The notes below the pieces were generated by a model. That model was not told the origin of the DNA and made no database searches. It saw nothing but the letters and a program-made list of their open reading frames with translations. From assembly GCA_001600695.1 (NCBI GenBank), contig BCKQ01000002.1, positions 1,846,001 through 1,899,432 on the forward strand: a stretch of DNA of 53,432 nucleotides. Reading direction: 5' to 3'. Below, one piece after another: positions 5,695-49,602 of the stretch. Source of the DNA: Ascoidea asiatica JCM 7603. Taxonomy: Eukaryota; Fungi; Ascomycota. How positions within the stretch are numbered: the stretch's first letter is position 1; each line of letters opens with the position of its first letter. A program made the translations under genes and the position numbers.

Positions 5695-6300
5695 ATGCAT
5701 GGAAAATACAAAATAACAGAGTTTGATTTAAAGTTGTTGGAAGAACAGATAATATTTAAAGTTCTCCTTTAGGAATTTACATATTTTCAAAAAATGTTTA
5801 TCAAAGATAAGGATATTTAACTTGCTATGTAAATTACTGAAACAGCCATTGAATCATTTTCTGCTTATTATGCTTTAAATAGAGAAAGCATCAATTTGAA
5901 AAGGAAGACTGAAAGAAAGCAACCGAAAAGTTTTAAAATAGTCATTGAGATTTATTTTAAAGAAGATTCAATAAAAAAAGACAATAATTGGAAATTTGAA
6001 AAAACAAAATCTGATAAAATATATCAGGCTCGTTTTAAGTGATTAAAGGCAAATAGGCAACTTTTTCTGGAAAAAGAATATATTTGAAAATTGAAAAATT
6101 TTTTAGTTCGCTAATAAGAAAATTTAGAAAAAAGAGCATCTCCAGTTATGAAAATAACTATTTTTTTTTTAATTATAGATTTTAATTACGGTATATATGT
6201 GAAATTTCATGCAACCCAATCTATCAACAAAAATAGAAATATTTCTTTTGAGATTACAAAAAAATCAGATGAAACTTTGGCTCAAGTACTTAATCTATGA
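5695..6300 (+). pseudogene. Possible decayed ORF of unknown origin
   Basis: One frame from ATG 5695 reads MHGKYKITEFDLKLLEEQ...ITETAIESFSAYYALNRESINLKRKTERKQPK... with about 8 stops in about 200 codons, roughly half what this composition would give. No recognisable family. Confidence 0.3.
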
Positions 6301-9080: not shown

Positions 9081-9087
9081 TATAAAA
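9081..9087 (+). promoter_or_regulatory. TATA box of the desaturase gene
   Basis: TATAAAA about 125 bp upstream of ATG 9210. Confidence 0.45.
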
Positions 9088-9209
9088 GAGATATGATCCT
9101 CCAATGCATTTGAGTGTTTCATTTATATAATTTGAATTGCTTCTCAAATCAGATTTATAGGTTTCTTTGAAATACAAATTTTTTAACAAAACCATTCTTT
9201 CTTTTTGCA

Positions 9210-17858: not shown

Positions 17859-19481
17859 ATGGAAGCAAATATCAATTTAAATATTCCTCTTTCTCGTCCA
17901 CAAACAATGATTTTTTCTACTCCAAATAATTCAAATCCAGATTTTTTCTCTGGATTTCAGACTCCATCTAATTCTCAACAAACTTACTCCTTCAATAATA
18001 ATTATATATTCAATAATACTTCAAATAATAATCCTAACTCAAATCAAAATCCAGGTATAACAATTGCCTCAAATAGTTTAAGAAGTTCAAATGCAAGTAT
18101 AGCCAGTTCAGTGACTTCTTCATCAGATTGTTTAGTTGATTATAATATCAATTTTAACCCTGTTTTTGATAAATTAATTCAATCGATTTATCAATCTCAT
18201 TGTTCAAATCCAACCGCAACACCATTTAATGGTAGATATCCACCTTCTGGTGTTGTCAGTAAAGTTGCAAAAAAAGTTTTAAAGCAATCAATTGAGAAAA
18301 AAATTCCTATGGAATATGATTCAATTAAAATTCCTTCAAAATCTCCTGAAAATTTAACAATAATAAGACAAAGATTATTATTTTTATGTAGTTCATCATT
18401 TGATGAGAATAATAATAGTAGAACTAATAGTCTTTCTTCAATAATTTCTTTTGATGCTGATCCTGATCAAACATTTTCTTTACAAAATACTGGAAATAAT
18501 AATTTCAATCTTTTAAATAATTTTAATAATTTAAATAATGGAAATACTTCAAATTCTATTAATGGTCAAATTATTGACTTTGATTCTTATAATTCAATTA
18601 ATCATGCTTCATTGAATTCAATATTTGAGTTGAAAAATATCAATCAGCAAAATATTCAACCTCCAAATGCACCATTTGCTGGATCAAGAACATCATCATT
18701 ATCTTCTCGTTCTTCAATTTCCTCTTCCAATAATAATTATTTTCAAAATGGGGCTTCATTAAATATCAACACTACTCTCAATAATAATATTAATAATAAT
18801 AATAATAATTATGGTATAAACTCGGGTACTAATACTCCTATTACAAACACAAATAATAATAATAATATGAAAAATAATTTTCAAGTCAACCCCTCATTGT
18901 ATTTGAAACAATCTCAATCTCAATCTCAATCTCCATCCCGTTTACATTCACCTTCTCAACTTCAATCACAGCAATATCAACAATATCAACAATTTCAGCA
19001 ATTTCAACAGCCTCAATCTCTCCAATCAGTTCAACCAGTTCAACAATTATCTCAATCTGGATCTCAATATTCCAACACTAATGATACTTCGTATTCTTCT
19101 TTAATGACCTTACAACCCGCATTAAACTCAGTTCCAGGAGGTAGTAAGAGTTCAAAAAGTAAACGAAATTCATTTATTCATACTAAGCCAATGTACTCCA
19201 ATCCTAATGATGCTATTGCTGTTCCTGGGCAAAATAATCAAAATCAAAGCCAAAATCAAACTCAACAACAATATGGATCTCATAATGCAGCAATTGCTTT
19301 AGCATCTTTGAATCAACCATTTAGTTTGAATAGCCCAGCAACTGAAGATTTTTCATTTGCAAAAAATTCTAGTAATTCTACTAGTCCTAAAGGTTTGAAT
19401 AATAATCAACCTCTCTATACAGCTAATTCAAGTAAGAGAAAAAGAGATAGTTTGAAGTTGAAAAGATTTGGACATCGTTAA
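17859..19481 (+). CDS. Uncharacterised N/Q/S-rich protein, probably a nuclear regulator
   Basis: 540-aa ORF. One ordered segment (FDKLIQSIY..NPTATPFNGRYPPSGVVSKVAKKVLK..IRQRLLFL) within low-complexity N/Q tracts; C-terminal KRKR NLS-like motif. Confidence 0.85.
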   Translation: MEANINLNIPLSRPQTMIFSTPNNSNPDFFSGFQTPSNSQQTYSFNNNYIFNNTSNNNPNSNQNPGITIASNSLRSSNASIASSVTSSSDCLVDYNINFNPVFDKLIQSIYQSHCSNPTATPFNGRYPPSGVVSKVAKKVLKQSIEKKIPMEYDSIKIPSKSPENLTIIRQRLLFLCSSSFDENNNSRTNSLSSIISFDADPDQTFSLQNTGNNNFNLLNNFNNLNNGNTSNSINGQIIDFDSYNSINHASLNSIFELKNINQQNIQPPNAPFAGSRTSSLSSRSSISSSNNNYFQNGASLNINTTLNNNINNNNNNYGINSGTNTPITNTNNNNNMKNNFQVNPSLYLKQSQSQSQSPSRLHSPSQLQSQQYQQYQQFQQFQQPQSLQSVQPVQQLSQSGSQYSNTNDTSYSSLMTLQPALNSVPGGSKSSKSKRNSFIHTKPMYSNPNDAIAVPGQNNQNQSQNQTQQQYGSHNAAIALASLNQPFSLNSPATEDFSFAKNSSNSTSPKGLNNNQPLYTANSSKRKRDSLKLKRFGHR

Positions 19482-25327: not shown

Positions 25328-27005
25328 TTTTTAAAATAAATCTAGTTAAAGCTTATTTGAATAAAAAGATCGTGTAATGGATTTTGATAATGTTTGATTA
25401 TTTTTATATGTTTTTCTGGTAATGATAGTTCAAAAATTAAAATAAGTTATGTGAAATGTCTTAAACTAGTTGATTGTTCATCGTCTAATTACAATTGTTT
25501 CTACAGTACTTAAGGTTATTTACCCATGGATTTGTTTCTTAGGATTTGTTTCAAGGGTTTATTTATTATCACTTTACCTCTCTAATTGTTCCTCGCTTCA
25601 AATATATAATATCGATGATATTAGCCCTGGGATTTAAAGAATGATTTGATACCAATTCCAAAACCAGTTTCAATATCAATACAAGTTTCACTTCCCAATC
25701 CAGATTCTAATCCAATAAACCTATTCCCACTCCAGCTCTGATCTCAGTCTGTCTGCGTCGAGTGTCTCAGTACCTCAGACCCAGAAAAAAACAGGTTCCG
25801 TTGGACTCTTACGTAAGCAGCCTCCGCCGCAGTCCGCCGCAGTGAGACGTTGCTAAACCACTGCGACTTAACCGCTGTGAAGCTTCGTAAAATACCACAC
25901 CATCCACTTCACACTTGATCAAATCTAAGAAGTAAATATATTGAATATAATGAATATTATATTGGACTCTGCAAAATAAAAGGTACTTTAGTCTTTGAAT
26001 CAACTGAAAGAACTGAAAGAACTGAAGAAACACTTTCACAAGAACATTTATAGAATACTGATAAATCGTCGATAAATACTTTGCTTTTTACTGTGCTTTT
26101 CATCTGTCTAAGAATTCTGCTTCACTAGCTTTTTAATTTATTTTTTTAATGCATATTTATTATTAACTGATATAAATAATATTAAAAGTAATTAATTATA
26201 TTTATAATCAAAATCACAACTAAATTTAAAATCAAGTTTAAAATTAAACATTAATCAAATTAATTTTGGATTTAAAATTATTCAAGAACCGTAAAACTTC
26301 ATTAAAAAAAGAAAAGTACTATATTCTTTATTTTTTCTTCTTTTTTTCATTATACAAAAAGTTAACAAGGTCTCTTTTCATTCACATTTCTCTCATATTC
26401 TATTAGACTCAGTTCTTTTCTTTCAATTATTTATCCAGAGTTACACAATTCTCTTTAAAAAAGTTTATTTTCTTTTGCTATTTAAGTCAATTCAATTGTT
26501 CCATCAATTTCTTTAATTAATTTATTTTCTAATTTTTAAATCTTTAAATCTTTAAATCTTTAGAAAATCTTTTCAATATTAGTACAGAGTATCTTTTCAT
26601 TTCAAAAAGATTTTCATAATTATCTTTCAGTAATAATCAATATCAATATCCTCATCATCAATATCGTCAACATCATTATCATTATATTTACTCATCAATT
26701 ACTGTAACTGTAATCATAAGTGTAACTGTATTTGTAACTGTAACTACCATTGTTACTGTAACTATTTATTAAATTTAATTCTCTTTCTTTAATTTAAGGA
26801 CAGGTATACCTGAGCAAAACCATCACTACTTCAATTTATCTTTTCAATTAACTGAAAATATTTCATTATTAATATATTCTTAATAAATTTCTTATAAATT
26901 ATATTTATACTTTATTTACACTTTTTTTTTTGATCTACTTAATAATCTTTTATTTTTATTTTTATTCATCTTTTTTAAATTTCATTAAATTGTATTGTTA
27001 CTAAA

Positions 27006-28602
27006 ATGGATATTTTTCAACAAGATCGTAGAACTTATAGGTATGTATCAAATCTTATTTCATTTAATAATATCATATTATATTATATTTCCTAATATAC
27101 TTTCAAATAATAATATTTTACTAACAACTAATTTATTTTTATTTTTTTTTCAAATTAGGGTTTTTAATCAAGATTTCACAATCGATAAAAGATTTGAATT
27201 ATCAAAAGAATTAGGTCATGGTGCTTATGGAATTGTTTGTCAAGCAAAATATACTGAATTACCAAATGGTGGTTCTGTTGCAATTAAAAAAATTACAAAT
27301 ATCTTTACAAAAAAAATTTTATGTAAAAGAGCTTTAAGAGAAATGAAATTATTAAAACATTTTACTGGTCATAAAAATATAACTTGTTTGTATGATTTAG
27401 ATATTGTTAATACTTCAAATTTTAATGAAATTTACCTTTATGAAGAATTAATGGAATGTGATTTACATCAAATTATTCGCTCAAAACAACCTTTAACTGA
27501 TGCTCATTATCAATCTTTTATTTATCAAATATTAAATGGTTTAAAATATATTCATTCTGCTGATGTTCTTCATAGAGATTTAAAACCTTCAAATTTATTA
27601 GTTAATGCTGATTGTGAATTAAAAATTTGTGATTTTGGTTTAGCAAGAGGTTTTTCTGATGATCCTTCAAAAAATCAAGGATTTTTAACAGAATATGTTG
27701 CAACTAGATGGTATAGAGCTCCAGAAATTATGTTAAGTTTTCAAAGTTATTCAAAAGCTATAGATATTTGGTCTGTTGGTTGTATATTAGCTGAATTATT
27801 AGGTGGAAAACCAATTTTTAAAGGTAAAGATTATGTTGATCAATTAAATCAAATTTTGAAAATTATTGGAACTCCAAATGAAGAAACTTTAGTTAGGATT
27901 GGTTCAAGAAGAGCTCAAGATTATGTTAGATCTTTACCATTTATGCCAAAAATTCAATATTCTCAATTATTTCCAAATGCAAATCCATTTGCTTTAGATT
28001 TATTAGAAAAAATGTTAACTTTAGATCCTCTGAAAAGAATTAATGTTGATGAAGCTTTACTTCATGATTATTTAAAAATTTGGCATGATCCAAATGAAGA
28101 ATTAGTTTGTGAAAATAAATTTGATTTCAGTTTTGAAGAAATAGATGATATTACTGATATGAAACAAATGATTCTTCAAGAGGTTAAAGGATTTAGAGAA
28201 GCTGTCAGAGCTCCTCAGGCAAATTCAGCAGTAGTGGAAGACAATCAAATGAATGAACAACTTCATCAATCTGTACCGGTACAAGAATCAGAACGATATC
28301 AAGGCTTACAACAACAACAACAGCCTCAACAATCACATACTCAACCACAACAACAACAATATTCAGATTCAACCTTACAATATCAAGATCAATATCAGTC
28401 TCAAATAATGGGTCAGCAACAACAAGGTGTTTCACCTTCAATTGATTTTAGAAATACAAATATCAAAGGTCATAATGAAGAAGATTTACCACCAAAACCT
28501 CAAGAAAATATTTATCAGCAACATAATGCTAATATAAATAATGGAAATCAAGTATTTGATTTAGAAAAAGAATTAGAATTTGGTTTAGATAGATACTGTT
28601 AA
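27006..28602 (+). CDS. SLT2: Cell wall integrity MAP kinase Slt2/Mkc1; exons 27006-27040 and 27159-28602
   Basis: Spliced N-terminus [24 protein letters not shown] matches Slt2 (..RHTFKVFNQDF). GHGAYG, HRDLKP, DFGLARG, TEY activation loop, Q-rich tail, [11 protein letters not shown] end. Confidence 0.96.
27041..27158 (+). other. 118-nt spliceosomal intron in SLT2 (phase 2)
   Basis: 5' GTATGT at 27041, branch point TACTAAC at 27119-27125, 3' TAG at 27156-27158; splicing restores the kinase frame. Confidence 0.93.
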
Positions 28603-32189: not shown

Positions 32190-33791
32190 TTATTCAACAA
32201 TTGTTGGATCTTTTCTTGAAGTGAATTGTAAAATACAATCATCTTGTGGAAAAATAGTTGCAAAAACTTTAATTTTTTCAGATAATGGAGTAACTTTGTG
32301 TTTAATATCATTAAATAAACATGCTTTACCAATTAAACCTGTGAATAATAACATAACATATTGTTGACCAAGACAAACATGTGGTCCAGTACCAAATACT
32401 AACCAATTTTTTTTAGCTTCAGAAGCTTTTGAACCTTCAATCCATCTTTCAGGTATAAATTCATCTGGATTTTCATAAACTTCAGGATCATGTAAAGCAG
32501 GATATAAAGTTGGTATAACCATTGAACCTTTTGGAGCTGTATAAGTTTCAGAAACTGGATATGGTTGTTTAACAACATATGGTACCATAATAACTGGAGG
32601 TCTATAACGTAAAGTTTCTTTTACAACCATAAAAGTATATTTCATTTCTTCAATCATTTCAATTGTTAATTTTTTATTAATATCACCATTTCTAACATCT
32701 AATTGTTCTTGTCTAATTTTTTTAACAATATCAGGTCTATCACCAAGAATTTGAAATAACCAACATGTTGCAGATGATGAAGCATCTTGTGATGCAAATA
32801 AAAATGTAAAAATTGCTTCAGAAATTTCTCTATTTGAAAATTCTCTAACTTGTAATTTTTTATTTGGATTTGTATCATTTTTAAAATTAGCTTCACTATC
32901 TTGCATAATTTTAACCCAAGCATCCATTACACAAGTTGGTTCTGCACCAGTTTTCATATTTAATTTTGCTTCTTTTGCACAATTTTCAAAAATTTTCATT
33001 GTCATATCTGCAACTTTTTTACCATACCATGGTTTTGTAAAAGGTAAAATTATTGGAAAATTAACTAATTCTAAAGCAGCAGTAACAAGATAATAATCAT
33101 CAGCAACTTTTCTAATTTGATCATCAGTTATATATTCACCACAAAAAGTTCTTAAAGAAACTGCACACATAATTTCTCTAAAATCATGAAAAAATGGAAT
33201 TGGACCATCTTTTGATAAATCTCTAAATTTTTTTAAATAAATATCATAGATTTTTTCTTGAGCAGGTATATAAACTTTTAAAGCTTGTCTTGTAAATAAA
33301 CCATTAAGACCTTTTCTATAATCAACATGAGCTTTACCATCAAGGAATACCCAATTTGTTGGTCTTAAAATTTTTATTGCAACATCAACAACACATGGTT
33401 TAACATATTTTGGACTCATTAAAATTTTTCTTGCTAAATCTCTGTTTGAAGCAATAACAACAAATTTATGAAATATTGAAACACAAGATAATGGACCAGA
33501 ATCCCATTTTTGTTTATATTCTTCAAATTTTGGATCTAATGATTCTAAAAATGGTCCAATAATTGGCCAAATTTTAAATTTTGGACCTGCAATTGAACCT
33601 TTATTTAATTGATAAACAACCTGATCATAAGTTATAATAATTATAAAAAGTGATAAAAGAATTTTCCAAACTGAAAATTCAAAATTAAAATTTTTTAAAT
33701 TTAAACTATTAAAAGATTTTGAAATATTATTAATATTTATAAAAGAACTTGAAGAATTATAATCATTTAATATACCATTTACAACTTCCAT
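32190..33791 (-). CDS. ERG5: Sterol C-22 desaturase, cytochrome P450 CYP61
   Basis: 533 aa. FTFLFASQDASSS I-helix, KETLRYRPP (ExxR), PERW, haem motif FGTGPHVCLG. Confidence 0.97.
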   Translation of the reverse strand: MEVVNGILNDYNSSSSFININNISKSFNSLNLKNFNFEFSVWKILLSLFIIIITYDQVVYQLNKGSIAGPKFKIWPIIGPFLESLDPKFEEYKQKWDSGPLSCVSIFHKFVVIASNRDLARKILMSPKYVKPCVVDVAIKILRPTNWVFLDGKAHVDYRKGLNGLFTRQALKVYIPAQEKIYDIYLKKFRDLSKDGPIPFFHDFREIMCAVSLRTFCGEYITDDQIRKVADDYYLVTAALELVNFPIILPFTKPWYGKKVADMTMKIFENCAKEAKLNMKTGAEPTCVMDAWVKIMQDSEANFKNDTNPNKKLQVREFSNREISEAIFTFLFASQDASSSATCWLFQILGDRPDIVKKIRQEQLDVRNGDINKKLTIEMIEEMKYTFMVVKETLRYRPPVIMVPYVVKQPYPVSETYTAPKGSMVIPTLYPALHDPEVYENPDEFIPERWIEGSKASEAKKNWLVFGTGPHVCLGQQYVMLLFTGLIGKACLFNDIKHKVTPLSEKIKVFATIFPQDDCILQFTSRKDPTIVE

Positions 33792-34278
33792 TTTTAAAAA
33801 TTATATAAAAATATAAATATATATATATATATGAATATATCAAATTAAAAAAGATTGATTAGTAATATATATAAATATAAAGGAAAAAGAAAAAGGAAAA
33901 AAGAAAACAAGCGAAAGATAAAGTGATATAGTTAAGATAAATAAAAGAATATATATAAGGAATATTAAGGATATATAAAAGGATATAAAACAAAGAGAGA
34001 GAAAAAAAAAAAGAAAAAAAAGAAAGATAAAAGAGAAAAGAATATAAGTGAAAAAGTGGACTATTAACTAAGATTACTAAAAAATAATAAAGAGTTTTAA
34101 ATAATAATAAATATACAGGTGATCTTATTGAAGGAAATAGATTGAATTAGTGGTTTTGTATCGGTATAAAAGATAAAAGAAAAAAATTATGGGCAGTTGA
34201 AGAGCGGAGCTTTAATTTTATCGAGCGCGAAGTCCACGAAGTCCACGAAAGTTCACTTATCGAGCAACAGAGACACAG

Positions 34279-34383
34279 CTGAACGAGCAGCAAACGACCG
34301 GTAAACGAGCAGTAAACGAGGGTCAGCCAGCACTGGGACCGGGAACTGGGATCGGCAATGAGAGCTCGCACACGATCAAACGA
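34279..34383. promoter_or_regulatory. Cluster of Upc2/Ecm22-type sterol response elements upstream of ERG5
   Basis: CTGAACGA at 34279 (reverse of TCGTTYAG), TAAACGA at 34302 and 34313, CAAACGA at 34291 and 34377; all in one orientation. Confidence 0.65.
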
Positions 34384-35563
34384 GGGTACGACACACACAA
34401 CGTCAAGTGAAAAATGGCGGATGACGTAAGCACGGATAGCACGGAAAAAGATAAAGCTTGTTTTTAAAAAAAAAATGCACGTGATTTACTGCTACTTCAC
34501 TTGTTACTTCAAATTGCCGTTTTAGGGACTGTGCCCGTTTTCATTCTCAATTTGTTAAAATTAATTATTGTGGCTAGTTAATCACGTGCTTGTGATTGAT
34601 TGGAAATAAAAAGAAAATCCGGCTTTCTGGCGACAGGTTGGTTTTATTCAAAAACATTTCAATTAACTTTATAAAGTATAAGAACAAGTTTAAATAATTC
34701 AATAAATGTTATGTTAAAGATGTAAAAGATGTAAAAGATGATAATATGGAAGAGACCATTTGAGTCTCATGAATTTAAAAAATTGGAATCTGAAAAATAG
34801 ATCGATGATAACCTTAATGATAATAATAATAAACTGATTTTACATCCTGATTGTTATGAAATAACTTATAACTTTTGTTTAATTTAAAAAAAAACAAAAT
34901 AATCTAAACAAGTATCAAATAACTATTGAATAAATATAAGTTGTATTTATTCATACTATACAAAATATTATTCAAATTTTTAGTCTTGGTGAATTAATTA
35001 CTTCAAATTCGAATTTAATTTTTAATGATATCAAAATTTTTCGGATTCTCATGATTAAAAACTTAAAAAAACTTCAAATTCTAGTAGAGCAAAACAGTTA
35101 CAAAAAGAAACTATAGCAATAATTCTAAAGGGATACTGCTTTTGAATTTTTTATTTCAAGATAAAATAGTCCTTTTTCATTCACAAAAAATGATACAGCC
35201 AATAATAATAATAAAAACTAATGTGCAAAATAAAATACCAAATTTTACCAACAGTTCATATGATACTACATCTGATTAATATTAAAGACTATAAAAGATA
35301 ATTTCTCAATTTTAATTAATCAGTTGTAAAAGTTTTATAAAACTGTTTAAATTAAATTCAATTATCAAATTTATCAACTTCTCAAGCTATTTTAAAATTA
35401 TCAATTTAAAATTAGCCCCATTTATTATTTTCTAATCAGAAATAGCTTTATTGAAAAACTCTATAGGTGATTCTTTAAGGTTGAACATTTAAATTTTTGA
35501 CGACTATATGGAATAAAATAAATACAAATATACCAAATATAATAATTTTAGAATTGTTTTTAA

Positions 35564-37902: not shown

Positions 37903-40215
37903 ATGTCAAGAATTGAATCTTTAAATATACCAAAACCTCAAAATATAATTAATAATGAAAGGAATAAATTCACAGATTTTAATATTGATGATATGTTTAA
38001 ATTCTTAGAAGGTAATGATTTAAATTCTTCTAAACAAACTTTAAAAATCATGCAAGAATTAGAAAGAGATTTAATACTTAAAAATGATAATAATTATTAT
38101 GATAATTTAAATAAATCTGATTTAAGAAGAATTACAATGTTAAAAATTAGACAATTATCAAATTATTTAGAAAGAGATATTATTCAAGCTCAATCAATTG
38201 AAAATAATTTAAATGAAAATAAAAAATCAAATTTATCTTTAGATTTATCTTCTTTTAATAAAAGATTATATCTCATTGCAGTTCATGATCCTCAATTAGG
38301 TACAAGACTTGGTGTTCATCTTGGTTTATTTTTAAATGCAATTAAAGGTAATGGTACAAAATCTCAATATAATTATTGGGCTTTTCAAAGAGGTGCTGCT
38401 TCAATTAAAAATATTTATGGATGTTTTTCAATGACTGAATTAGCTCATGGTTCAAATGTTGCAGGTCTTGAAACAACTGCAACTTATGATTTTAATAAAA
38501 AACAATTTATAATTAATACTCCTCATTTAGGTGCAACTAAATGGTGGATTGGTGGTGCTGCATCTTCTGCTAATCATACTGTTGCTTATTGTAGATTAAT
38601 TGTTAATAATATTGATCATGGTATAAAAACTTTTGTGATACCATTAAGAGATTCAAATCATAATCTTTTACCAGGAATTTCAATTGGTGATATTGGTTCA
38701 AAAATGGGTAGAGATGGTATTGATAATGGTTGGATTCAATTTACAAATGTTAAAATTCCAAAAAATTTTATGTTACAAAAATATTGTAAAATTAATGATA
38801 AAACAAAAGAAGTTATTGAACCACCTTTAGCTCAATTAGCTTATGGTGCTTTATTAGATGGTAGAGTTCAAATGGTTATTGAATCTTTTAGAAATGGTGC
38901 AAGATTTTTAATTATTGCTTTAAGATATTCTGTTGGTAGAAGACAATTTGGTAAAAGTAATAAAAGTAATTTAAATTTTCAAAATGAATTTGAATTAAAA
39001 AATTTTAATTTAAATAATAAAATTTCAAATAAAAATTTAATTTTAGAAAATCAATTAATTGATTATCCTCATCATCAATATAGATTAATACCATTATTAT
39101 CAATAATTTATTCAATTTCATGTGCTTCAGATAAATTATATAAAAATCATAAATTTGTTACAAATCTTTTAGATCAATTATCAGAAAATGAAGAATTAAT
39201 TTCAAATGAAAAATTTTTAATAAATTCAATAAATTCTTTAAAATCTTTATTTATTACATCAGCATCATTAAAATCAACTTGTACATGGTTTACAGCAAAT
39301 TTAATTGATGAAGCAAGACAATCATGTGGTGGTCATGGTTATTCATCATATTCTGGTTTTGGTAAAGGTTATAATGATTGGGTTGTTCAATGTACTTGGG
39401 AAGGTGATAATAATATTTTAGCTACAAGTGCAGGTAAATCAATAATTAAATTTGTTCAATATATTTTAAAAGGTAAATTTAAATATGTTCCAAAAGATTT
39501 TAATTATTTAAATTATTGTTATAAAAATGAGAAAGAAATTTTAAATTCAATTAATTCTTCTTCTTCTTCTTCTTCTTCTTCTTCTTCTAATGAAGATGAT
39601 GAATTTGATCCAAATAATTATAATAATTTATTAAATTTAATTGGATTAATGATATTAAAATTATCAATATCATGTATTGAAATTTTAAAAAATTCAAATA
39701 ATAATTTTGATTTAATTACAACAGAATGTGTTAAATTATCAAAATTTAATGCATATTATTATTTATTAAATTCATTTATTGAATATTATAATTTTTCAGA
39801 AACTTCAAATAATATTAAAGAATCATTAAATTATTTAATAAATTTATTTTCAAATTATGAAATTTATGAAAATAGTAATTTTTTTTTACAATTTAATTTA
39901 TTAAATTCTAAAAAAATTTTAAAAATTAAATCAAATATGATGAATAAATTATTACCATTTTTAAGAAAAAGAATAATTGGATTAACAGATTCATTTAAAT
40001 ATTCAGATTTTTTAATTAATTCACCATTAGGATCATATAATGGAGATATTTATAATAATTATTTTGATTTAATTAATAGAATTAATAATAATTCATCAGA
40101 TTATGGTAAAAGTGGATATGAAGATATATTATTAGAAACTTTAAAAAGAAAAAGTGTTGAAGAAAGAGAATTTTTTGAAAAAAGTGAAGAATCTTTAAAG
40201 ACTTTAGGAAAATGA
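37903..40215 (+). CDS. POX1: Peroxisomal acyl-CoA oxidase
   Basis: 770 aa. GCFSMTELAHGSNV, KWWIG, GDIGSKMGRDGIDNG, RYSVGRRQF, CGGHGY, catalytic TWEGDN. Paralogue identity unknown. Confidence 0.95.
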   Translation: MSRIESLNIPKPQNIINNERNKFTDFNIDDMFKFLEGNDLNSSKQTLKIMQELERDLILKNDNNYYDNLNKSDLRRITMLKIRQLSNYLERDIIQAQSIENNLNENKKSNLSLDLSSFNKRLYLIAVHDPQLGTRLGVHLGLFLNAIKGNGTKSQYNYWAFQRGAASIKNIYGCFSMTELAHGSNVAGLETTATYDFNKKQFIINTPHLGATKWWIGGAASSANHTVAYCRLIVNNIDHGIKTFVIPLRDSNHNLLPGISIGDIGSKMGRDGIDNGWIQFTNVKIPKNFMLQKYCKINDKTKEVIEPPLAQLAYGALLDGRVQMVIESFRNGARFLIIALRYSVGRRQFGKSNKSNLNFQNEFELKNFNLNNKISNKNLILENQLIDYPHHQYRLIPLLSIIYSISCASDKLYKNHKFVTNLLDQLSENEELISNEKFLINSINSLKSLFITSASLKSTCTWFTANLIDEARQSCGGHGYSSYSGFGKGYNDWVVQCTWEGDNNILATSAGKSIIKFVQYILKGKFKYVPKDFNYLNYCYKNEKEILNSINSSSSSSSSSSSNEDDEFDPNNYNNLLNLIGLMILKLSISCIEILKNSNNNFDLITTECVKLSKFNAYYYLLNSFIEYYNFSETSNNIKESLNYLINLFSNYEIYENSNFFLQFNLLNSKKILKIKSNMMNKLLPFLRKRIIGLTDSFKYSDFLINSPLGSYNGDIYNNYFDLINRINNNSSDYGKSGYEDILLETLKRKSVEEREFFEKSEESLKTLGK

Positions 40216-40300
40216 ATATATTATATGAATTTTATATACGTTTTATTTACAAAATCATATTTTTTTATTTATTTTAATTTATTAGTTATTTATGTATGGG

Positions 40301-40303
<3 letters not shown>

Positions 40304-40337
<34 letters not shown>
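40304..40337. repeat. (AT)17 microsatellite in the shared POX/ISA1 terminator region
   Basis: Perfect dinucleotide run, followed by (AAGT)n. Confidence 0.9.
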
Positions 40338-40341
<4 letters not shown>

Positions 40342-40401
40342 TATTATATTGTATATAAGTAAGTAAGTAAGTTAGTAAGTAAGTAAGTAAGTAGGTAAAG
40401 A

Positions 40402-41325
40402 TTAAACCATAAAAGATTCACCACAACCACAAGTACCTTTTGAATTTGGATTTTTAAATATAAATTTTGAATATAATTTATTATCAACATAATCCATTTG
40501 AGAACCAATAATACTAAATAAAGCTTTTGAATCAATTAAAATTTTAATATCATTTTGAATTAAAATTTCATCAAATTTTTCTGGATTTTTAACAAATGTT
40601 AAATTATAAGATAAACCTGAACAACCTCTATTTTTTACAGAAATTCTAATTAATTTTGGATTTGGATTATTATATAATTTTTTTAAATGATCAATTGCAG
40701 AAGGTGTTAAAGTTATTAAAGCTTTACGAGGTTTAAGAGTTCTTTTTTTTTTCTTTAATTTTATTGGATTTATATTTGAAGAAGAAGCGTTTAAAGTGGT
40801 AGAAGTATTGGTTGGAGGAGGAGGAGGAGTAGTATTTGTAGTAGTATTTGCAGTAGTAATTGAATCCTGCGGTATAATTAAATCTTTTTGTAATTTATAA
40901 GAATTTAATTTTTTAATATTTTTATTACCAAATACACTTGAAAAAGATCTTGAAGGTAAAGAATGTTTTGACCATTTATCATTATCATTATCAATATCAT
41001 TATCATTATCATTATCATTATCATTCTGATTATTAATTTCTTTATTATTATTAATGTTATTGATATCAGTAGTTGCAGATTTTGAACTTATATTATTTAT
41101 ATTTATATCATTTATATTACTTATATTATTTATATTATTTATATTATTTATAATATATGAATCATTTGAAATTGAAGGAATTGTCTGTAAGAATCTTTTT
41201 GAATTTGATTTTAGATTTGATTTTGATTCATTTAAGAATCTTTTAAGTATTAAATTTTTTAAATTATTTTGAATTAAACTATTTGAAGTTATAGATTTAG
41301 ATATGATTAGTGAATTTAATATCAT
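40402..41325 (-). CDS. ISA1: Mitochondrial A-type Fe-S cluster assembly protein
   Basis: 307 aa. Basic presequence, low-complexity linker, LKPRKALITLTPSA, RGCSGLSY, C-terminal CGCGESFMV. Confidence 0.95.
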   Translation of the reverse strand: MILNSLIISKSITSNSLIQNNLKNLILKRFLNESKSNLKSNSKRFLQTIPSISNDSYIINNINNINNISNINDININNISSKSATTDINNINNNKEINNQNDNDNDNDNDIDNDNDKWSKHSLPSRSFSSVFGNKNIKKLNSYKLQKDLIIPQDSITTANTTTNTTPPPPPTNTSTTLNASSSNINPIKLKKKKRTLKPRKALITLTPSAIDHLKKLYNNPNPKLIRISVKNRGCSGLSYNLTFVKNPEKFDEILIQNDIKILIDSKALFSIIGSQMDYVDNKLYSKFIFKNPNSKGTCGCGESFMV

Positions 41326-41737
41326 AATGATTATATTATTATATGATTATGAATATGAATATGAATTTAAGTGATTGAAGATGATTTAAATAATAATAAA
41401 TATATATATATATAAATGAATAAATAAGATTAGTCCAGAAATAGAATCAATGAAATGAAATAATGATGAATATTGATCTTTATTTAATAAACAATTATTT
41501 ATCAAATAATCAAATAATCAAATAATCTTCACTCAGTCAAAAAAGTAAGCATTATTAATACAAGAAATATTCTTACAGCACTAAATCAATCGGCCATTGA
41601 GCTGAGTGACCCGAAGTTGGAAGTGTTGGAAGTGTTGGAAGTGCGACGAGCGGGTTTGTGGCCATGAAAGTCACGAGTGTGGCTCTGACGACAGGAAACC
41701 CACTGCAATGGCGCTCTGCTGACAAAACAAAGCTCGT

Positions 41738-41899
41738 TGATTGGCAGTTTCACAGACCTCTGCTGGTCTCAGTGGTCACGGAACTGTCTCTTTGCAAAGT
41801 CCACTGCTATTTCTGCTCCGGGAAAACCCTCAGACCCTCAAACTTTCAGTGCGAAATCAGTGGCAGTGGGCACTCGAAACCTGCGTAGTTTTTGATTGG
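41738..41899 (-). promoter_or_regulatory. Two CCAATCA boxes in the ISA1 promoter
   Basis: TGATTGG at 41738-41744 and 41893-41899. Confidence 0.5.
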
Positions 41900-42089
41900 A
41901 CCGCGCCAGAGCCCTGCTTGTGAGTAGTGAGTAGTGAGCAGTGCACAGTCATGTGACCTGCCAGGGCTCTGTTCTTGTTTTTGTTCTTTTTTTTTGCTTT
42001 TACTCTTTGAACGTTGTTGAAATGCCATTGAGAAATGTTGAAATGAGGACGAGTTTTCTGTTCTCCCGAAAATAGCAGTTATTAATATA

Positions 42090-42092
<3 letters not shown>

Positions 42093-42130
<38 letters not shown>
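42093..42130. repeat. (TA)19 microsatellite downstream of XKS1
   Basis: Perfect dinucleotide run, likely acting as a 3'-end efficiency element. Confidence 0.9.
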
Positions 42131-42136
<6 letters not shown>

Positions 42137-42266
42137 TCCATTGAAACAGGTATTATTAAGAATAATAATTTATAAATGTAGATATAATATGTATTATAAT
42201 TAAGTATATCTTTTGCAAAACTAATAAAAAAAACTAACAAAAATAAATAAAAAAAAACAATATATT

Positions 42267-44108
42267 TTAAACATCTAAAAGTTTTTCTAAATTTTCAAGA
42301 ACTTTTGTTCCATTTTGATATTCTTTCCATTCATCATTAACATTAAATTCTTCTAAAGTATTCCATTTAAATTTTAAATTTAAATATTCATCATATTCAA
42401 TAAATTTTTTTACATCTTTTTTAATATTTTCTTCAATATAATATGACCAATTTGCTTTATATGATCCACCTAATGCACAACCATTGGTTTCAAAATTTTT
42501 AAAATTTCCACCAATTTTTTGATCATTACCTAAAATTTTACTAAAAAATTTAATTATTGATTCATTTTTACTACTACCACCAACATAAAATAATTTATTT
42601 GGTTTAACTTCATTATTAATTTCATTATTAATTTCATTATTAATTTCACCAACTTCATTTTTTAACATTGGATTTGCTCTCATTCTACAACTTAAAGCTT
42701 GTGATTCAATAATACCTTTAACATCTTTTTCAATTTCCCAATTAATATTATTAAAATTGATAATTTCATTTGTTAATTTATTAAATTCTGCTTTTTTAAA
42801 TTGTGATAATGCATTTGGTACAATTTCTCCATTTGGAAAATAAATTCCAATTTTATTATCTTTAAATAATTCATAATTTTTATTATTTGAATCTAAAATT
42901 TCATTAAATTTATTCCATCCATCATTATTATCATTTTTAATATTATATTTTTTATTAATTTTATCTTTAATTTGATTTCTTGCTAAAGCTCCATTACAAT
43001 AACATATCATTCCCATATAAAGATTTTTATTTGTTGGATGAATAAACATATGATATAATGGTGATGGTTTATAATTTTTTGTAATAATTAATAATGTTGT
43101 TGAAGTACCTAAACTAATTAATAAATCATTTTTTTTTAATGGTAATGACATAATTGTTGCTAAATTATCTCCAGTAAATGAATAAATTTTACAATCTGAA
43201 TTAAAACCATATTTTAAAACAAAATAATTTGAAATTTTTCCAATATTTTTATATCCAACAGGTTCAACATTACCTAATTTTAATCTTAAATCTTTTACTA
43301 AATTTTTTTCACTTTGATTATCTTTATTATTATTAATTGCAGAATTTATTGTAATTTTTAATAAATCTTCATTCCAATCTTTTTTTTCAATATCATATAA
43401 ATTCATACCACAAGCATCAGCTTGATCAATATTTGCAATATCTCCAATAAATAAAGATGATAAAAATGATGATAATAATGAAATTCTATATGTTTTTGAA
43501 TATTTTAAATAATCATCATTAATTAATTTTTTAATTTGAGGTCCAGTAAATCTATAATGAGCTCTTGAACCTGTAATTTTTGATAAATTTAATTCACCAC
43601 CAATTTTTTTTTCAAATTCTTTAATTTCATTATTTGTACTATGATCTTGCCAATTTGGTACAAAATCAAAAGTAAAAGAATTTGGAAAAATTTGTTGTGA
43701 TAAATTTAAATTTAAATTTTTATCTAAATTTTTTAAAATTTTTTTTGAAAAATTTGACCAATAAACTGAACCATGTTGTTGAGCAGAACCAGAAATTGAA
43801 TTAACTTTAAAAAATTTAAAATTATCTAATTTCATTTTATTTAATAATAAATCTAAAGATTTTAAATATAAATTTATTGGAGCAAAAATTCTACCAATTT
43901 TTTCAAATTTTAAAACACCATTTTTTGTTTTAAATTCAGGAAATTCATTATCAAAATCAACAGAATATGTTTTTAAATGAATTAAATTTTGATTAATTAC
44001 AACAACTTTAAATTGTTGAGTTGATAAATCAAAACCTAAAGAATATGTATCATTATCATTATCAACAAAAGATGAAGCTGGAGTTGGAGTTGAAGAATCT
44101 TGAGTCAT
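42267..44108 (-). CDS. XKS1: Xylulokinase (FGGY family)
   Basis: 613 aa. LGFDLSTQQ, SGSAQQHGSVYW, PNWQDHST, TGSRAHYRFTGPQI, TGDNLATI, SLGTSTT, YCNGALAR. Confidence 0.96.
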   Translation of the reverse strand: MTQDSSTPTPASSFVDNDNDTYSLGFDLSTQQFKVVVINQNLIHLKTYSVDFDNEFPEFKTKNGVLKFEKIGRIFAPINLYLKSLDLLLNKMKLDNFKFFKVNSISGSAQQHGSVYWSNFSKKILKNLDKNLNLNLSQQIFPNSFTFDFVPNWQDHSTNNEIKEFEKKIGGELNLSKITGSRAHYRFTGPQIKKLINDDYLKYSKTYRISLLSSFLSSLFIGDIANIDQADACGMNLYDIEKKDWNEDLLKITINSAINNNKDNQSEKNLVKDLRLKLGNVEPVGYKNIGKISNYFVLKYGFNSDCKIYSFTGDNLATIMSLPLKKNDLLISLGTSTTLLIITKNYKPSPLYHMFIHPTNKNLYMGMICYCNGALARNQIKDKINKKYNIKNDNNDGWNKFNEILDSNNKNYELFKDNKIGIYFPNGEIVPNALSQFKKAEFNKLTNEIINFNNINWEIEKDVKGIIESQALSCRMRANPMLKNEVGEINNEINNEINNEVKPNKLFYVGGSSKNESIIKFFSKILGNDQKIGGNFKNFETNGCALGGSYKANWSYYIEENIKKDVKKFIEYDEYLNLKFKWNTLEEFNVNDEWKEYQNGTKVLENLEKLLDV

Positions 44109-44143
44109 TGTTATATTAATTGATTGATTGATTGATTGATTGA

Positions 44144-44422
44144 TTATAAATAATTTTTTTGTTTTAAGAAAGATACTGAATTTATTTTTTTATTTAAAAA
44201 AGACCAAGGAGGTAAAATTAAAATTGCAATTAATATTGAAAAAAAAGAAAAAGAATAAATAATATAATTAATATTTTGAAATATGAAACCAAATAAAAAT
44301 GAAATTAAAGTATTTAAATAAAATGTATAATTTAATAAATTTAATGATAATTCTTGTCCTTTATAATTGATATTACCTTCTAATTTATCTAATAAAAAAT
44401 TAATATCGAAATTAAAATCCAT
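44144..44422 (-). CDS. SPC1: Signal peptidase complex subunit Spc1/SPC12
   Basis: 92 aa. INYKGQ (IDF/Y.GQ motif), two TM helices with FGF..Q, then LPPW..LNK. Confidence 0.85.
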   Translation of the reverse strand: MDFNFDINFLLDKLEGNINYKGQELSLNLLNYTFYLNTLISFLFGFIFQNINYIIYSFSFFSILIAILILPPWSFLNKKINSVSFLKQKNYL

Positions 44423-45071
44423 AATAAATAAAAAAAGAAAAGAAAAAATTAAAAAAGATTTAAAAAATAAAGAAATTTGAAAGAGTATTTATATTAAAAT
44501 AATAATATATATAGTTAAGTAAGTAAATAAGTAAATAGGGAGAATATTGAATATTATTGAATTATTTTGATTACGAGACTAAGAGATTTATTCGAGTTAA
44601 CAAATAAGTATTTAATTATTTAATTTAATTTCACAATCGAGAAAGAGAAATTGAAAAATATGCGAAACCTGGGGAAAGAGAGTGATTGAATAGAAATGGA
44701 TGAGAATAGTTGGGAGTAAATTGGAATGGATAATTGAATACTTGACTGTGAAAGCAATTGGGTTGGAATATATTGGAGCTTGAATGCAGTGAATTGATTG
44801 ATATTGTCTGTTGATCAGTGAATGATTGTTTAGATGTATCCTTTATTTGTTTCTTTCTTTGTTTCTTTCTTCTATTCAATATATTCAATATATTCAATAT
44901 ACTAAATACTAAATACTAAATATATTCTTTATATTCTTTATATTCTTTATATTCTTTATATCTTCTTCTTCTCTCTTCTCGCTGTCGATAAATGATCAAA
45001 ACGAACAAATCGCCACTTTCGCAGACTCGTCGACCGTTGCCCCCGCGGAGTCCCGGCACCCCTGCGAAACC

Positions 45072-45146
45072 ACGCGAAAACATGAAAAAATGGAAAAATA
45101 TCAAAGAAAAAGAAAAATACGCGAAAATACGCGAAAGTACGCGAAA
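45072..45146. promoter_or_regulatory. Four ACGCGAAA (SCB/MCB-like) elements
   Basis: Copies at 45072, 45119, 45129 and 45139. Confidence 0.55.
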
Positions 45147-45327
45147 CCACCTTGGAAAACACAAAATATATTTATATCTATTTATTTATTTTATCTACCT
45201 GTATCTATTTAGTCTATTGGTATATTCATTGAATTTGAAGTATTTGAAGTATTTGAAGTATGTTTGATTATATAAAAAGAATTTGAAAAGAATAAAAAAA
45301 AGATAAATTTAATGGGGGTTTTATATT

Positions 45328-46235
45328 TTAATTGTTAAGAAACTCAATTATGGGTTCTCCTATTGTCTGATAAGCATCTTTGGCCCAAAGAACATCTAAA
45401 TGAGAATATTTCTCAAGTCTTTTAACTTTAAACATTGGTTTATCATTATCATTATCAATATCATTATTAAAATTGAAATTTTCATTTTCATATTCATTGA
45501 AATGACTTACCAATTGTTCTCCATTAACTAAATTATCTTCAATTGGTATAAATAAATAAATTGAAGGATATTCTTTCATAAATTTAAACCATGATTTTTT
45601 ATATGGAAATATTGTATTTGAATTATTATAAAATCCTTTATTACTTATCCACCATATCATCATCTTACAACTTATATAAACTGGACTAAATAAAAATTGT
45701 CTATTTCTAAAAAATGGATTCCATAATTTATCATTCCAATTAAATAAAAAATTAAACATTAAATATGCAATTTTACAATAAATTATTTTTAAAAAATTTA
45801 TATTATTATTACTAATAAGTAAAAAATTTCTAATATTCATCATTATTGGCATAAAACTTAATATACCAAAAATTGAATTAAATAAAAAATTTGGAATTTT
45901 ATGCATAAATTTTATAAATAATTTTTCTGTTAATAAAATTCCTGGATAAATTGCAGGTGATAATCCAATAAATTTATCTATATATAAATTTATATCATTA
46001 AAATTATTTATTATTAAATATATTGTTATTGTTGTTCCTTGAGAATGTGCAATAATATTAATCTTATTTATCTCATTATTTCTATTATATTCATTAGTAT
46101 TAGAAATAAATTTAATCATTGAAATTAAATCAAATTTAGAAAATTCATTTATATTCCAATTCCAAAAATTTGGATTATTATCATTTAAATTTATATTTTC
46201 TGGATTAAATCCACATCTAAAATTACCTAACCAAA

Positions 46236-46283
<48 letters not shown>

Positions 46284-46800
46284 ATAAATAAAATCCTAAT
46301 GAATTTTTACCACTTGTTAAATATGCTCCAGATGATTGTAATAATCCATGTAATAATAATATTGGTTTTTTCTTATTTTGTTTTTCAATACTATTAATTT
46401 CTTTTGGATTTATTAATCTTTGTAAAATTATTGTAAATCCATCTGGTGTTATAATTTTATATTCTAATAATTTTAATCCATTTAATTCAACATAATAATT
46501 TAAATCATCAATTAAAAATTTTTCTTCTTTACTTTTTAAATTTTCTTCTTCTTCATTATTGATATTTCCATTATTTCTATTATTATTATTATTATGAATA
46601 TCATTATGATGAAATAAACTTATTATAAATACAATTAATAATCTAATTAAAGCAATTATCATTAATATTAATAAAAATATTGCTGATAAAACATTTGAAG
46701 AAATTTTAAAAAAAATTATTTTATATTTTGGATAAACTAATTCTTCTCTAGAAAGTAATTTCAGAGTTGATTTATTTGATCTTGAAGATCCACTATCCAT
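45328..46800 (-). CDS. Steryl ester hydrolase / AB-hydrolase lipase, Yeh1/Yeh2-like
   Basis: 490 aa. N-terminal TM helix, TPDGF.I.L, LLHGLLQSSG, nucleophile elbow AHSQG, YSHLDVLWA. Confidence 0.9.
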
Positions 46801-49602
46801 TTTATTTTAAACTATAATTCAATTTTCTTTTATTCTATTCTATTATAAATTAAATTAAATTGAATTAAGTCTGTTTTGATTTGAAATAAAAATGTAAATA
46901 TTATATACAGTATATATATATATTTCTTCCCATTTGAAAAAAAAAGATTAATTATCAATCAAGATGATAAACTCATTAAATATATCTATCTATATATATA
47001 TTTCAATATAATTTATCATATAATTCTATTGTTCCTTTGATTATTTTGAATTCCAAAGTTCAAATAACTAAAATGAACCTTCATTTGGCTCTTTCAATCG
47101 AAATAATCAAAAGTAATACCCGTTTCAACAATTCAGCATATATTTTTCACTATTTTATTGCTATTGTTGGCTTGTGTTCAATTTGTCACTTGAAATATCA
47201 ATAATCTATCCGGCACCGGATTGCCCAGTTTTACCGGATACACAGTCCTAGATATTTGCCCAGCCTCAACCGGTGTCCAATATTTTAATTGACTGTGCCA
47301 CTTTGTGGAGTGTTGACGCAAAAAACAATTCAACAGGCTTAAAGGTTTTGCGTACCCCGAAAATCAAGTCCGGGGCATGTGCGCCTCAAGTAAACTGACC
47401 TGCAGATTTTAATTTTATGGTCACCCGGATATACCTGTTTTTATTTCCCAATGCAGTGAACTTGGTTGGTGGTTCTCCAGCCCCACCCTCGGAAATGGTT
47501 TCTGCCGCAGAGCCCTAACTGTCGCGTGTATCTGTGGCTCGGCTGCCAGAGTTAGCTTCCAGCGGCAATAGCTCCCACACTAAAGTTAAATTCATTCTAT
47601 TATTCTGGTTAATTGTTATTGTTATATCTTGATTACCTTCAATCACAGTAATTAACTATTGTTCTGAGAATAATTCCAAATAATTCTATAATTATGTAAT
47701 TATTCAATTATATATATACTATTTTATTTTGATAATAATGATCTTTTGTGAAGAAAAAATATTCAAAGCTGATAATTTATGATAGTTTACGATGATTTTT
47801 ATCTTTTGTTTATTGAATGAAGTAAATCTTTATTACTTGTTATCGGTTCAAGTATTCCAACTCGTATTAAAACAATACAAATAAGTTTGATAATCTTATG
47901 TAGTGAATCATCTACGAAAACCCATTTTTTATATAATTTTTAATATAAATTATAATTTGTTGGATTTAAGCACACTAAAATTAAAAAAAAAATGTTTTAA
48001 AACTTATTCATAAAATTTTAACTCTGATTTGTTCCTGCCTTAGGGTATCAAAAACTGATTATGAATCTTATCAATTAGAATAAAGATAAATGTTACAAGA
48101 ATTAAAATTTTATTTTATGTATCATTTACTCCAATATTAAAATATGTAAAGAAAAAATTAAAAATTATTATTTTTTTACCTGGATTAGCTTAAATTCTTT
48201 TACCCAATCATTCAATTTTTTGTCTTTCAAAGCCAATTCTCTTCTCGAATTAATTCAAACTTCAATCAAAGGAAAGTTAATCAAAACAAAATTTTTATTT
48301 TTATCTATGTTGCGCCATGTTTATGGTTTATAAGAATTACCCTATATTTTATTTATAAAATTATTCTCCAAACAAAATCCTTATAATAATGTTTTATTTG
48401 TATTGTAAAAAAAAAAAAAAAAGGGAAAGAAAATGATACGTTGAAATTTTACAATATTCAAATCCGTAAGAATGTATAAAGGAGAACTGGAAACAAATTA
48501 ACCCAAAAATTACTTATTTTTGGACTCATGAAACCACAAATGTTACACATTTCCTACAGGTTCCTTTTTTTTTTTTGCTTTTCAATTTCAAATAAATGAG
48601 CACTATACTTTTTCAACGTGGTTTATTTTTGTTTTATTTAACTTAATTTCATATAAAAATTGATCTTTTAAGAGAATTTCGTTAAATTTCATTTCAAAAA
48701 AGAAATTACATTTTTTTTTTGGCTTTCATTACAAGACTAATTTAACTGAGAAATTAAGAACAAAAATTCAAATTTGAAAACCAAGTACAAATATCGAGTA
48801 TCAAAAGATATAAACTGCTAACCATCAGCTATCAGAAAGTAAGAAAACAAGTCTTATTTTATACTTTGATATATGAAAGCCTTTCATAATTAATAGTCAA
48901 TCTGACTTATTAAAAGATTAAAATAGCCTCTACGTCACGGAAAGTCCAGAGAATGAATTATTCCATTAATAATCTCCAATAATCTTTAACAATCAACAGC
49001 AATCCCAGAAGCCTTTCCTTTTTCTTCTATCCTCATATTCCAACCAACATCTCTGGCTCTTTTTCTTCTCTTTCTCTTCTCATTTCTTTCTTTCTTCATT
49101 CTTTCTTTTATTCTCCAGGCTCCAAAAACGTTCGCAAAACTCGCAAACATTGAAAAAGTTACCGAAAACAAATAGTTCGGGTCTGCAGAATGCCACCGCG
49201 CCAGACCGCCGGGCGAATGACACCGCTGCACTCGGCACCAGATATGCTCATGATTCAAATCTTTAATTTATAAAATTCTTATACGTAATTTAATTTTATT
49301 CAAAATTTATTTCATTTTATTATAAATTTGATTTGATTTGATCTGTCTTCAAGGCTATATTTTCACTGATAATTTCACTAATAATAAATTATAATAAACT
49401 ATTTTTATTTATCAGATATTTCTTTATCTTCTTTTTATTACAATAGAACTTCTTATTTAATTAATTCTTTATCCACACACTTAATTATTTTTATATTTTA
49501 TTCATCAATTCATTCATCAAATTCATTATCATTTTATATTACATATAAGTTAAACAAATAAGGGTAAATAGAATAATAATATAAAAATTACTATTTCATA
49601 TA

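Follow-up and report, generated by a model that had tools for sequence, protein, structure and literature searches.

SPC1 and XKS1 of Ascoidea asiatica probably form a conserved leaky-scanning bicistron of budding yeasts

In the genome of Ascoidea asiatica JCM 7603 two functionally unrelated genes, SPC1 and XKS1, lie 35 nt apart on the same strand. We analyzed this locus within a window of 53,432 nt (assembly GCA_001600695.1, contig BCKQ01000002.1, positions 1,846,001 to 1,899,432), whose first base is position 1 of all coordinates given for it here, and compared it with its counterparts in other budding yeasts. The initial annotation, made from the window alone, had proposed that the two genes share one mRNA and that XKS1 is translated by leaky scanning or by re-initiation. 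The comparison with other yeasts, and not the window alone, carries the case for an SPC1-XKS1 bicistron. The features of the locus are collected in Table 1.

Table 1. Features of the SPC1-XKS1 locus, in window coordinates
Feature	Position	Strand	Description
SPC1 open reading frame (ORF), upstream cistron	44144-44422	minus	92 aa; 12-kDa subunit of the signal peptidase complex (endoplasmic reticulum)
XKS1 ORF, downstream cistron	42267-44108	minus	613 aa; D-xylulokinase, FGGY family
Inter-ORF spacer	44109-44143	minus	35 nt, (TCAA)6 + TTAATATAACA; period-4 repeat; no G, no ATG
Leader before SPC1	44423-45082	minus	ATG-free, AT-rich, rich in tandem repeats; putative 5' untranslated region (UTR), or containing it
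GC-rich island 5' of SPC1	44965-45113	minus	candidate promoter and transcription start; TTTCGCG-type repeats inside
AT-rich stretch past the XKS1 stop	42093-42266	minus	contains (TA)19; putative 3' UTR and terminator

The SPC1 product matches the Pfam profile SPC12 (PF06645) over positions 1-69 of 71, with an E value of 4e-16 and a score of 59.3 bits against the curated cut-off of 23.6, and is a small protein with two hydrophobic segments, which places it in the SPC12/SPCS1 family. The SPC1 translations show the conserved motifs EG.I...GQ and PPW, and tblastn matches the gene to SPC1 of 8 other yeasts. The XKS1 product contains the FGGY_N and FGGY_C domains (Pfam) and is 56% identical to that of A. 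rubescens and 42-53% identical to those of other yeasts (named Xks1 or Xyl3; coverage 95-98%). With both domains present and yeast xylulokinases as its near-full-length best matches, it is an FGGY xylulokinase orthologous to XKS1/XYL3, and it retains every invariant column of the alignment. The ATG at 44108 is the sole XKS1 start able to include the conserved GFDLSTQQ strand, because the ATGs that follow, at 44059 and 44053, lie in other frames. SPC1 and XKS1 each occur once in the 20.3-Mb genome. Since XKS1 is intact, single-copy and in possession of all its invariant residues, it must be expressed somehow. A second copy of SPC1 or XKS1 with a promoter of its own was considered and is ruled out by the single-copy state of each gene in the assembly. 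Between conserved FGGY_C blocks of XKS1, a 12-nt tandem repeat at 42604-42648 (3.8 copies) encodes NNEI NNEI NNEI NNEV, a typical Asn-rich expansion of this AT-rich genome, and a perfect (TA)19 microsatellite occupies 42093-42131, 136 nt 3' of the XKS1 stop.

The initial annotation had described the junction correctly: the SPC1 stop lies 35 nt before the XKS1 ATG on the same strand, the spacer has the repeat composition listed in Table 1, no AUG follows the SPC1 start within that gene, the next ATG upstream is at 45083 (about 45081 in that annotation), and the start context is U-rich for SPC1 (ttatttattATGG) and A-rich for XKS1 (aatataacaATGA). On the minus strand, ATGs occur at 45229, 45083, 44422 (the SPC1 start), 44108 (the XKS1 start) and from 44059 onward, so that the 314 nt from one start to the other, made up of SPC1 and the spacer, hold no further ATG in any frame. 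The 661-nt ATG gap upstream of SPC1 is the second longest on the minus strand, with about 10 ATGs expected from composition, and the 975 nt before the XKS1 start hold exactly one ATG, that of SPC1. The SPC1 start carries A at -3 and U at -1, -2, -4, -5 and -6; the XKS1 start carries A at -1, -3, -4 and -6. SPC1 is 86% A+T, with G at only 5.7%. No internal ribosome entry site (IRES) or hairpin is predicted in the 121 nt around the junction, for which the minimum free energy is 0 kcal/mol.

The window holds 13 short GC-rich islands (called as 80-nt windows with GC >= 0.5), and most genes have one 180-900 nt upstream of the ATG. XKS1 has no island of its own, as the initial annotation had observed: the nearest one belongs to SPC1, whose ATG it precedes by 543 nt, and XKS1 has no other island upstream. 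The flanking islands are those of the downstream ISA1-like gene (41572-41988) and of the upstream lipase-like gene (47198-47598). Other tandem intergenic distances in the window are about 900 nt, compared with 35 nt for SPC1-XKS1. The SPC1 island also contains, at 45072-45146, a 10-nt repeat of the TTTCGCGTA type in about four copies, resembling the MluI cell-cycle box (MCB) and Swi4-Swi6 cell-cycle box (SCB) sites.

SPC1 lies directly 5' of XKS1, on the same strand, in 20 of the 20 budding-yeast loci in which SPC1 could be assessed. These loci were drawn from named genomes, Logan assemblies and a metagenome scan with an XKS1 alignment, and SPC1 was located in them by tblastn with SPC1 proteins. 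Measured from the SPC1 stop to the XKS1 ATG, the spacer ranges from -40 to 842 nt. It is shortest in Komagataella phaffii (-40 nt, with the XKS1 AUG inside the SPC1 ORF), followed by two Metschnikowia-like metagenome loci and Candidozyma haemuli (-11 nt in each), Saccharomycopsis crataegensis (0 nt), Pachysolen tannophilus and Ogataea parapolymorpha (2 nt in each), A. asiatica itself (35 nt), a Brettanomyces-like locus (61 nt), a Saccharomycopsis-like locus (116 nt), A. rubescens (119 nt) and Candida boidinii (131 nt); the Scheffersomyces, Candida orthopsilosis-like, Cyberlindnera, Phaffomycetaceae-like and Saccharomycetaceae-like loci have spacers of 157-842 nt. The SPC1 ORF measures 83-104 codons across the loci. 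An intergenic promoter has no room in K. phaffii, O. parapolymorpha, Pachysolen, S. crataegensis or the Metschnikowiaceae, where the ORFs overlap or are separated by 2 nt at most. Metagenomes also yielded filamentous-fungus-like XKS1 loci (38-41% identity); the 3 kb upstream of these showed no SPC1, but introns could hide a short gene there, and the comparison is confined to the Saccharomycotina.

By ATG content the loci form a tight, ATG-free group of 11, with spacers of -40 to 131 nt, and a loose group of 9, with spacers of 119 to 842 nt. No ATG occurs between the two starts in any tight locus, compared with 2-10 in each loose one. Dinucleotide shuffles predict about 36 ATGs over the 11 tight loci (30.8 over the ten with spacers of 116 nt or less), where none is seen, and when the loci are split at 116 nt, the zero-ATG state is found in 10/10 tight loci and in 1/10 of the others (C. 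boidinii, at 131 nt; Fisher P 1.2e-4). Synonymous resampling, in which the SPC1 protein was fixed and codons were drawn from the XKS1 codon usage of the same species, predicts 12.4 ATGs inside SPC1 over the 11 tight loci, with 0 seen (product of P(0), 1.4e-8); the same procedure predicts 19.1 for the 9 loose loci, which contain 22 and thus show no depletion. The avoidance spans the whole SPC1 ORF, its 5' half included. ATGs are thus avoided at synonymous sites too, but in the tightly linked loci only. The SPC1 start context follows the same division. Yeasts strongly prefer A at -3, and this base of SPC1 is C or T in 7 of the 10 loci with spacers of 116 nt or less and a purine in all 10 others (Fisher 0.003). 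Both features that the initial annotation had suggested following into relatives are found there, the adjacency in every locus and the AUG avoidance in the 11 tight loci and none of the 9 loose ones.

Data from K. phaffii bear on the transcript itself. Four Logan contigs of 2116-2234 nt (runs SRR32004184, 185, 187 and 189) span both ORFs, beginning 5, 16, 68 and 94 nt 5' of the SPC1 ATG, past the stop of the upstream sorbitol-dehydrogenase-like gene, and ending 25-91 nt 3' of the XKS1 stop. The assignment of SRR32004184-189 to RNA is tentative, being based on contigs of 2.1-2.2 kb with clustered ends, compared with 8-17 kb in other runs; the four contigs are transcript-like, being what RNA assembly of one unit would give. 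In the study by Liang et al. 2012 (PMC3547764), where K. phaffii SPC1 is PAS_chr1-1_0491 and XKS1 is PAS_chr1-1_0280, RNA covers 0.77-0.81 of an over-long SPC1 model (Tables S2 and S4), a coverage whose 5' boundary falls about 17 nt upstream of the true SPC1 AUG. XKS1 was assigned a 52-nt 3' UTR in that work, and a separate 5' UTR was not definable (PMC3547764). The SPC1 model of strain GS115 (118 aa, 3684-4040) begins at an upstream in-frame ATG beyond the RNA coverage and is 96 nt too long; the CBS7435 model (86 aa) fits.

These observations suggest that SPC1-XKS1 is probably a conserved leaky-scanning bicistron. From the sequence and its comparison we infer the position of the transcription start site (TSS), co-transcription in this genome and the scanning mechanism. 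SPC1 and XKS1 would form one transcription unit, with transcription starting near the GC island at about 44965-45113, and the mRNA would carry, in order, an AUG-free leader, the SPC1 ORF, the unstructured 35-nt spacer and the XKS1 ORF. Part of the scanning 40S subunits are predicted to initiate at the SPC1 AUG, and the remainder to bypass it and, with no AUG in any frame over the next 314 nt, to begin translation at the A-rich XKS1 AUG. Selection against AUGs inside SPC1 would maintain the arrangement, which would be old, being common to the Pichiales, Pachysolen, the Metschnikowiaceae and Saccharomycopsis, and a shorter SPC1-only isoform may coexist with the longer mRNA. Leaky scanning jointly explains the AUG-free ORF1 and spacer, the weak ORF1 context, the spacers of -40 to about 130 nt and the unstructured junction. 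The stretch between the two starts is free of AUG in every frame in the window and in 10 other tight-spacer yeasts, and with a 35-nt spacer, a minimum free energy of 0 and no XKS1 island, neither a separate XKS1 promoter nor an IRES-like structure is found between the ORFs. Of the two routes proposed in the initial annotation, it is leaky scanning that is favored by the adjacency, the ATG avoidance and the weak -3 base of the tight group.

Several observations weigh against the leaky-scanning bicistron. The window is one of the tight loci having A at SPC1 -3, so its context is mildly weak only. An SPC1 stop 1.9 kb from the poly(A) tail would be expected in yeast to expose the mRNA to nonsense-mediated decay. 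The nearest relative, A. rubescens, lacks the signature (119-nt spacer, 2 ATGs inside SPC1, G at -3), and coupling can therefore be lost within the Ascoidea clade. An XKS1 tree pairs the window with A. rubescens as sisters, within a clade also holding Saccharomycopsis, and requires just 3 changes to account for the ATG-free state; the loci do not represent independent origins, although each lineage is a separate test of maintenance because SPC1 has diverged to 30-50% protein identity. Short-read contigs such as those from K. phaffii merge overlapping transcripts and cannot prove a single molecule. Expression in that yeast is also uneven, with SPC1 at 152 and 156 reads per kilobase per million mapped reads (RPKM) in a surface-display strain on methanol versus 23-30 elsewhere (PMC3547764), and XKS1 at 37-64 throughout while SPC1 varies 5-6.6 fold (PMC3547764, Tables S2 and S10). 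SPC1 RPKM is below XKS1 RPKM in 4 of 6 samples, which could reflect either a 5'-edge effect or XKS1 transcripts starting inside SPC1. The RNA levels of the two genes are thus partly uncoupled, so that K. phaffii must possess either an SPC1-only isoform or a start site specific to XKS1. A promoter inside SPC1 may contribute, which would be compatible with the K. phaffii expression data.

These data would also fit two separate, overlapping mRNAs, an explanation that we consider unlikely. The main XKS1 TSS would lie inside the SPC1 ORF or leader and the SPC1 poly(A) site in the spacer or early XKS1, and the SPC1 coding sequence would double as the XKS1 5' UTR and lack ATGs for that reason. The shifts of K. 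phaffii SPC1 against flat XKS1, and its lower RPKM in most samples, would follow from such an arrangement, and tandem transcript overlap is common in compact yeast genomes, with 1290 overlapping transcripts reported in PMC3547764. AT-rich yeast DNA is rich in TATA-like and poly(A)-signal-like motifs, the A+T content of SPC1 in the window being that given above, and A. rubescens must already use a TSS 3' of its last SPC1-internal ATG. An internal TSS, however, requires ATG avoidance only 3' of itself, whereas the 11 tight loci avoid ATGs over the whole ORF, and it leaves unexplained the pyrimidine at SPC1 -3 (7/10 tight versus 0/10 loose loci). Separate transcription also sits poorly with an XKS1 that has no GC island of its own in the window and with the K. 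phaffii contigs, 4/4 of which start 5' of the SPC1 AUG.

Compositional chance in this genome, in which an AT-rich, low-G gene for a small, hydrophobic, Met-free protein simply gives zero ATGs and the spacing reflects a conserved neighborhood, is improbable. The window by itself does little to oppose it: dinucleotide shuffles of the interval give P 0.23-0.26 and synonymous resampling of SPC1 gives P(0) 0.25 for the absence of ATGs, values that are weak because G makes up just 5.7% of the gene, and the missing ATGs in this window are by themselves suggestive but weak evidence. The window has further long ATG-free runs, and the sister species is without the signature. Set against this, only 1.0% of 311-nt sense windows in coding sequence are ATG-free, the median being 7 ATGs (16 long ORFs of the window), and A. 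asiatica obeys the rule linking spacers of up to 116 nt to a complete lack of ATGs, to which C. boidinii is the single exception in 20 loci. Chance also leaves XKS1, intact, single-copy and with all invariant residues kept, to be expressed across a 35-nt spacer that gives it no promoter site outside SPC1.

Although an 80S-mediated route is inducible in S. cerevisiae (PMC11952965) and the spacers of 0, 2, 2 and 35 nt in several species resemble stop-start coupling, translation of XKS1 from a bicistronic mRNA by termination-reinitiation after SPC1, the second route of the initial annotation, is highly improbable: it does not need an ATG-free ORF1, yet ATG avoidance is the strongest signal; spacers of 35, -40 and -11 nt do not place the ORF2 start at or just after the ORF1 stop; the XKS1 AUG lies 5' of the SPC1 stop by 40 nt in K. 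phaffii and by 11 nt in the Metschnikowiaceae, a start behind the stop being unreachable at -40; and the weak SPC1 -3 base indicates bypass rather than translation followed by re-initiation. The -40 geometry and the AUG-free ORF1 are what set this route aside in favor of leaky scanning. An ORF1 of 83-104 codons also far exceeds the short upstream ORFs that permit efficient re-initiation in yeast.

The wider history of the pair can be read in the distribution of the two groups. We give about even credence to the view that SPC1-XKS1 is a two-protein bicistron of ancient date, kept by selection in the Pichiales, Pachysolen, the Metschnikowiaceae (including the Candidozyma/C. auris group) and the Ascoideales, where XKS1 relies on leakage past the SPC1 AUG. 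The Scheffersomyces/Candida clade, A. rubescens and the Phaffomycetales/Saccharomycetales-like lineages would have escaped through a spacer with a promoter, after which ATGs would have re-accumulated in SPC1.

The comparison also corrects gene models at these loci. SPC1 is uncalled or missing from the protein collection for A. rubescens, Pachysolen and O. parapolymorpha and over-long in K. phaffii GS115, and XKS1 of A. rubescens is fused to ISA1. In the latter genome (KV454480.1) the deposited 859-aa model ASCRUDRAFT_7972 (6001-9211) joins XKS1 to the downstream ISA1-like gene, whereas reading of the ORFs gives a 600-aa XKS1 ending at 7785 and an uncalled SPC1 at 5600-5863. In the assemblies used, SPC1 is likewise uncalled in O. 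parapolymorpha (2235-2498) and Pachysolen tannophilus (3747-3998), and the exact sequences of these two proteins do not occur in a collection of 15 billion proteins.

Long AUG-free leaders may be a wider property of the window. In about half of its genes the ATG-free run before the start codon extends back to the GC-rich island. The longest such runs, at 16177-17859 (plus strand, 1682 nt), 26149-27006 (plus strand, 857 nt) and 33791-34544 (minus strand, 753 nt), begin near GC-rich islands and run right up to the start codons of long ORFs or stop 37 nt short of them, the 1682-nt run preceding the ORF at 17859. Many genes of the window may thus start their transcripts near islands and carry very long AUG-free 5' leaders. 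The neighborhood of the pair is itself partly old: here (window 37903-46800), as in O. parapolymorpha, the pair has an acyl-CoA oxidase gene nearby, and the gene that follows XKS1 serves iron-sulfur (Fe-S) assembly, being ISA1-like in A. asiatica and A. rubescens and of the NifU type in Ogataea.

Budding yeasts are the textbook case of one gene per mRNA, and the bicistronic RNAs known from them are regarded as rare and are mostly young or considered noise. Across yeast orders, SPC1-XKS1 ties unrelated housekeeping and metabolic proteins together, and selection at the codon level keeps AUGs out of its upstream gene. If the interpretation is true, the pair would be the first natural operon-like gene with deep conservation in the Saccharomycotina, and would come with a built-in evolutionary control group. 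In the genetically tractable K. phaffii and Ogataea it would allow leaky scanning past a complete ORF to be measured in a natural setting; it would also let a bicistron be compared before and after its natural resolution into two genes, and provide a template for two-gene expression cassettes in production yeasts.

Among known systems, SPC1-XKS1 resembles the ancient two-protein mRNAs CDC26-TTM3 of plants and MOCS2A/MOCS2B of animals, in which leaky scanning gives access to ORF2 and the two ORFs overlap in some cases; those examples belong to other kingdoms, involve other gene pairs and have experimental support. Viral termination-reinitiation at UAAUG-type overlaps shares with some yeast loci a stop and start that abut or overlap (0, 2 and -11 nt), and differs in that an AUG-free ORF1 is unneeded and the K. 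phaffii geometry of -40 nt does not fit. In S. cerevisiae, SPC1 and XKS1 are unlinked, on chromosomes X and VII. Bicistrons of that species, including YOR302W-CPA1 (PMC8573964), share with SPC1-XKS1, as proposed here, the same-strand arrangement, short spacers, one RNA and leaky scanning past an upstream AUG; YOR302W, however, is a 25-codon regulatory peptide, whereas SPC1 is a conserved structural protein, and most bicistronic RNAs of S. cerevisiae are young, poorly conserved and of doubtful function (PMC8573964). Neither SPC1 nor XKS1 is mentioned in that survey of S. cerevisiae bicistronic transcripts, and full-text literature searches returned no description of the pair, the study by Liang et al. 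2012 (PMC3547764) giving expression values only. The closest parallels are the bicistrons of green algae, where mutagenesis has shown that a weak ORF1 context and AUG depletion before ORF2 mark leaky scanning (PMC11892635). The TOM22 and OST4 loci (PMC11892635; PMC7896298) share with SPC1-XKS1 a small membrane-protein ORF1 and the AUG depletion in ORF1 and between the ORFs; their weak ORF1 context has a counterpart in most tight yeast loci and a mild one in A. asiatica. Green-algal bicistrons also have in common with the pair a short inter-ORF distance, functionally unrelated proteins and conservation across distant species. They differ in being backed by full-length transcripts and in vivo mutagenesis, SPC1-XKS1 being known from comparison alone, and SPC1-XKS1 differs in turn in its budding-yeast host and in a leader that in the window is apparently longer than 500 nt. 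The leaky-scanning bicistron is thus a known kind, and what appears to be new is the SPC1-XKS1 pair and the depth of its conservation in budding yeasts.

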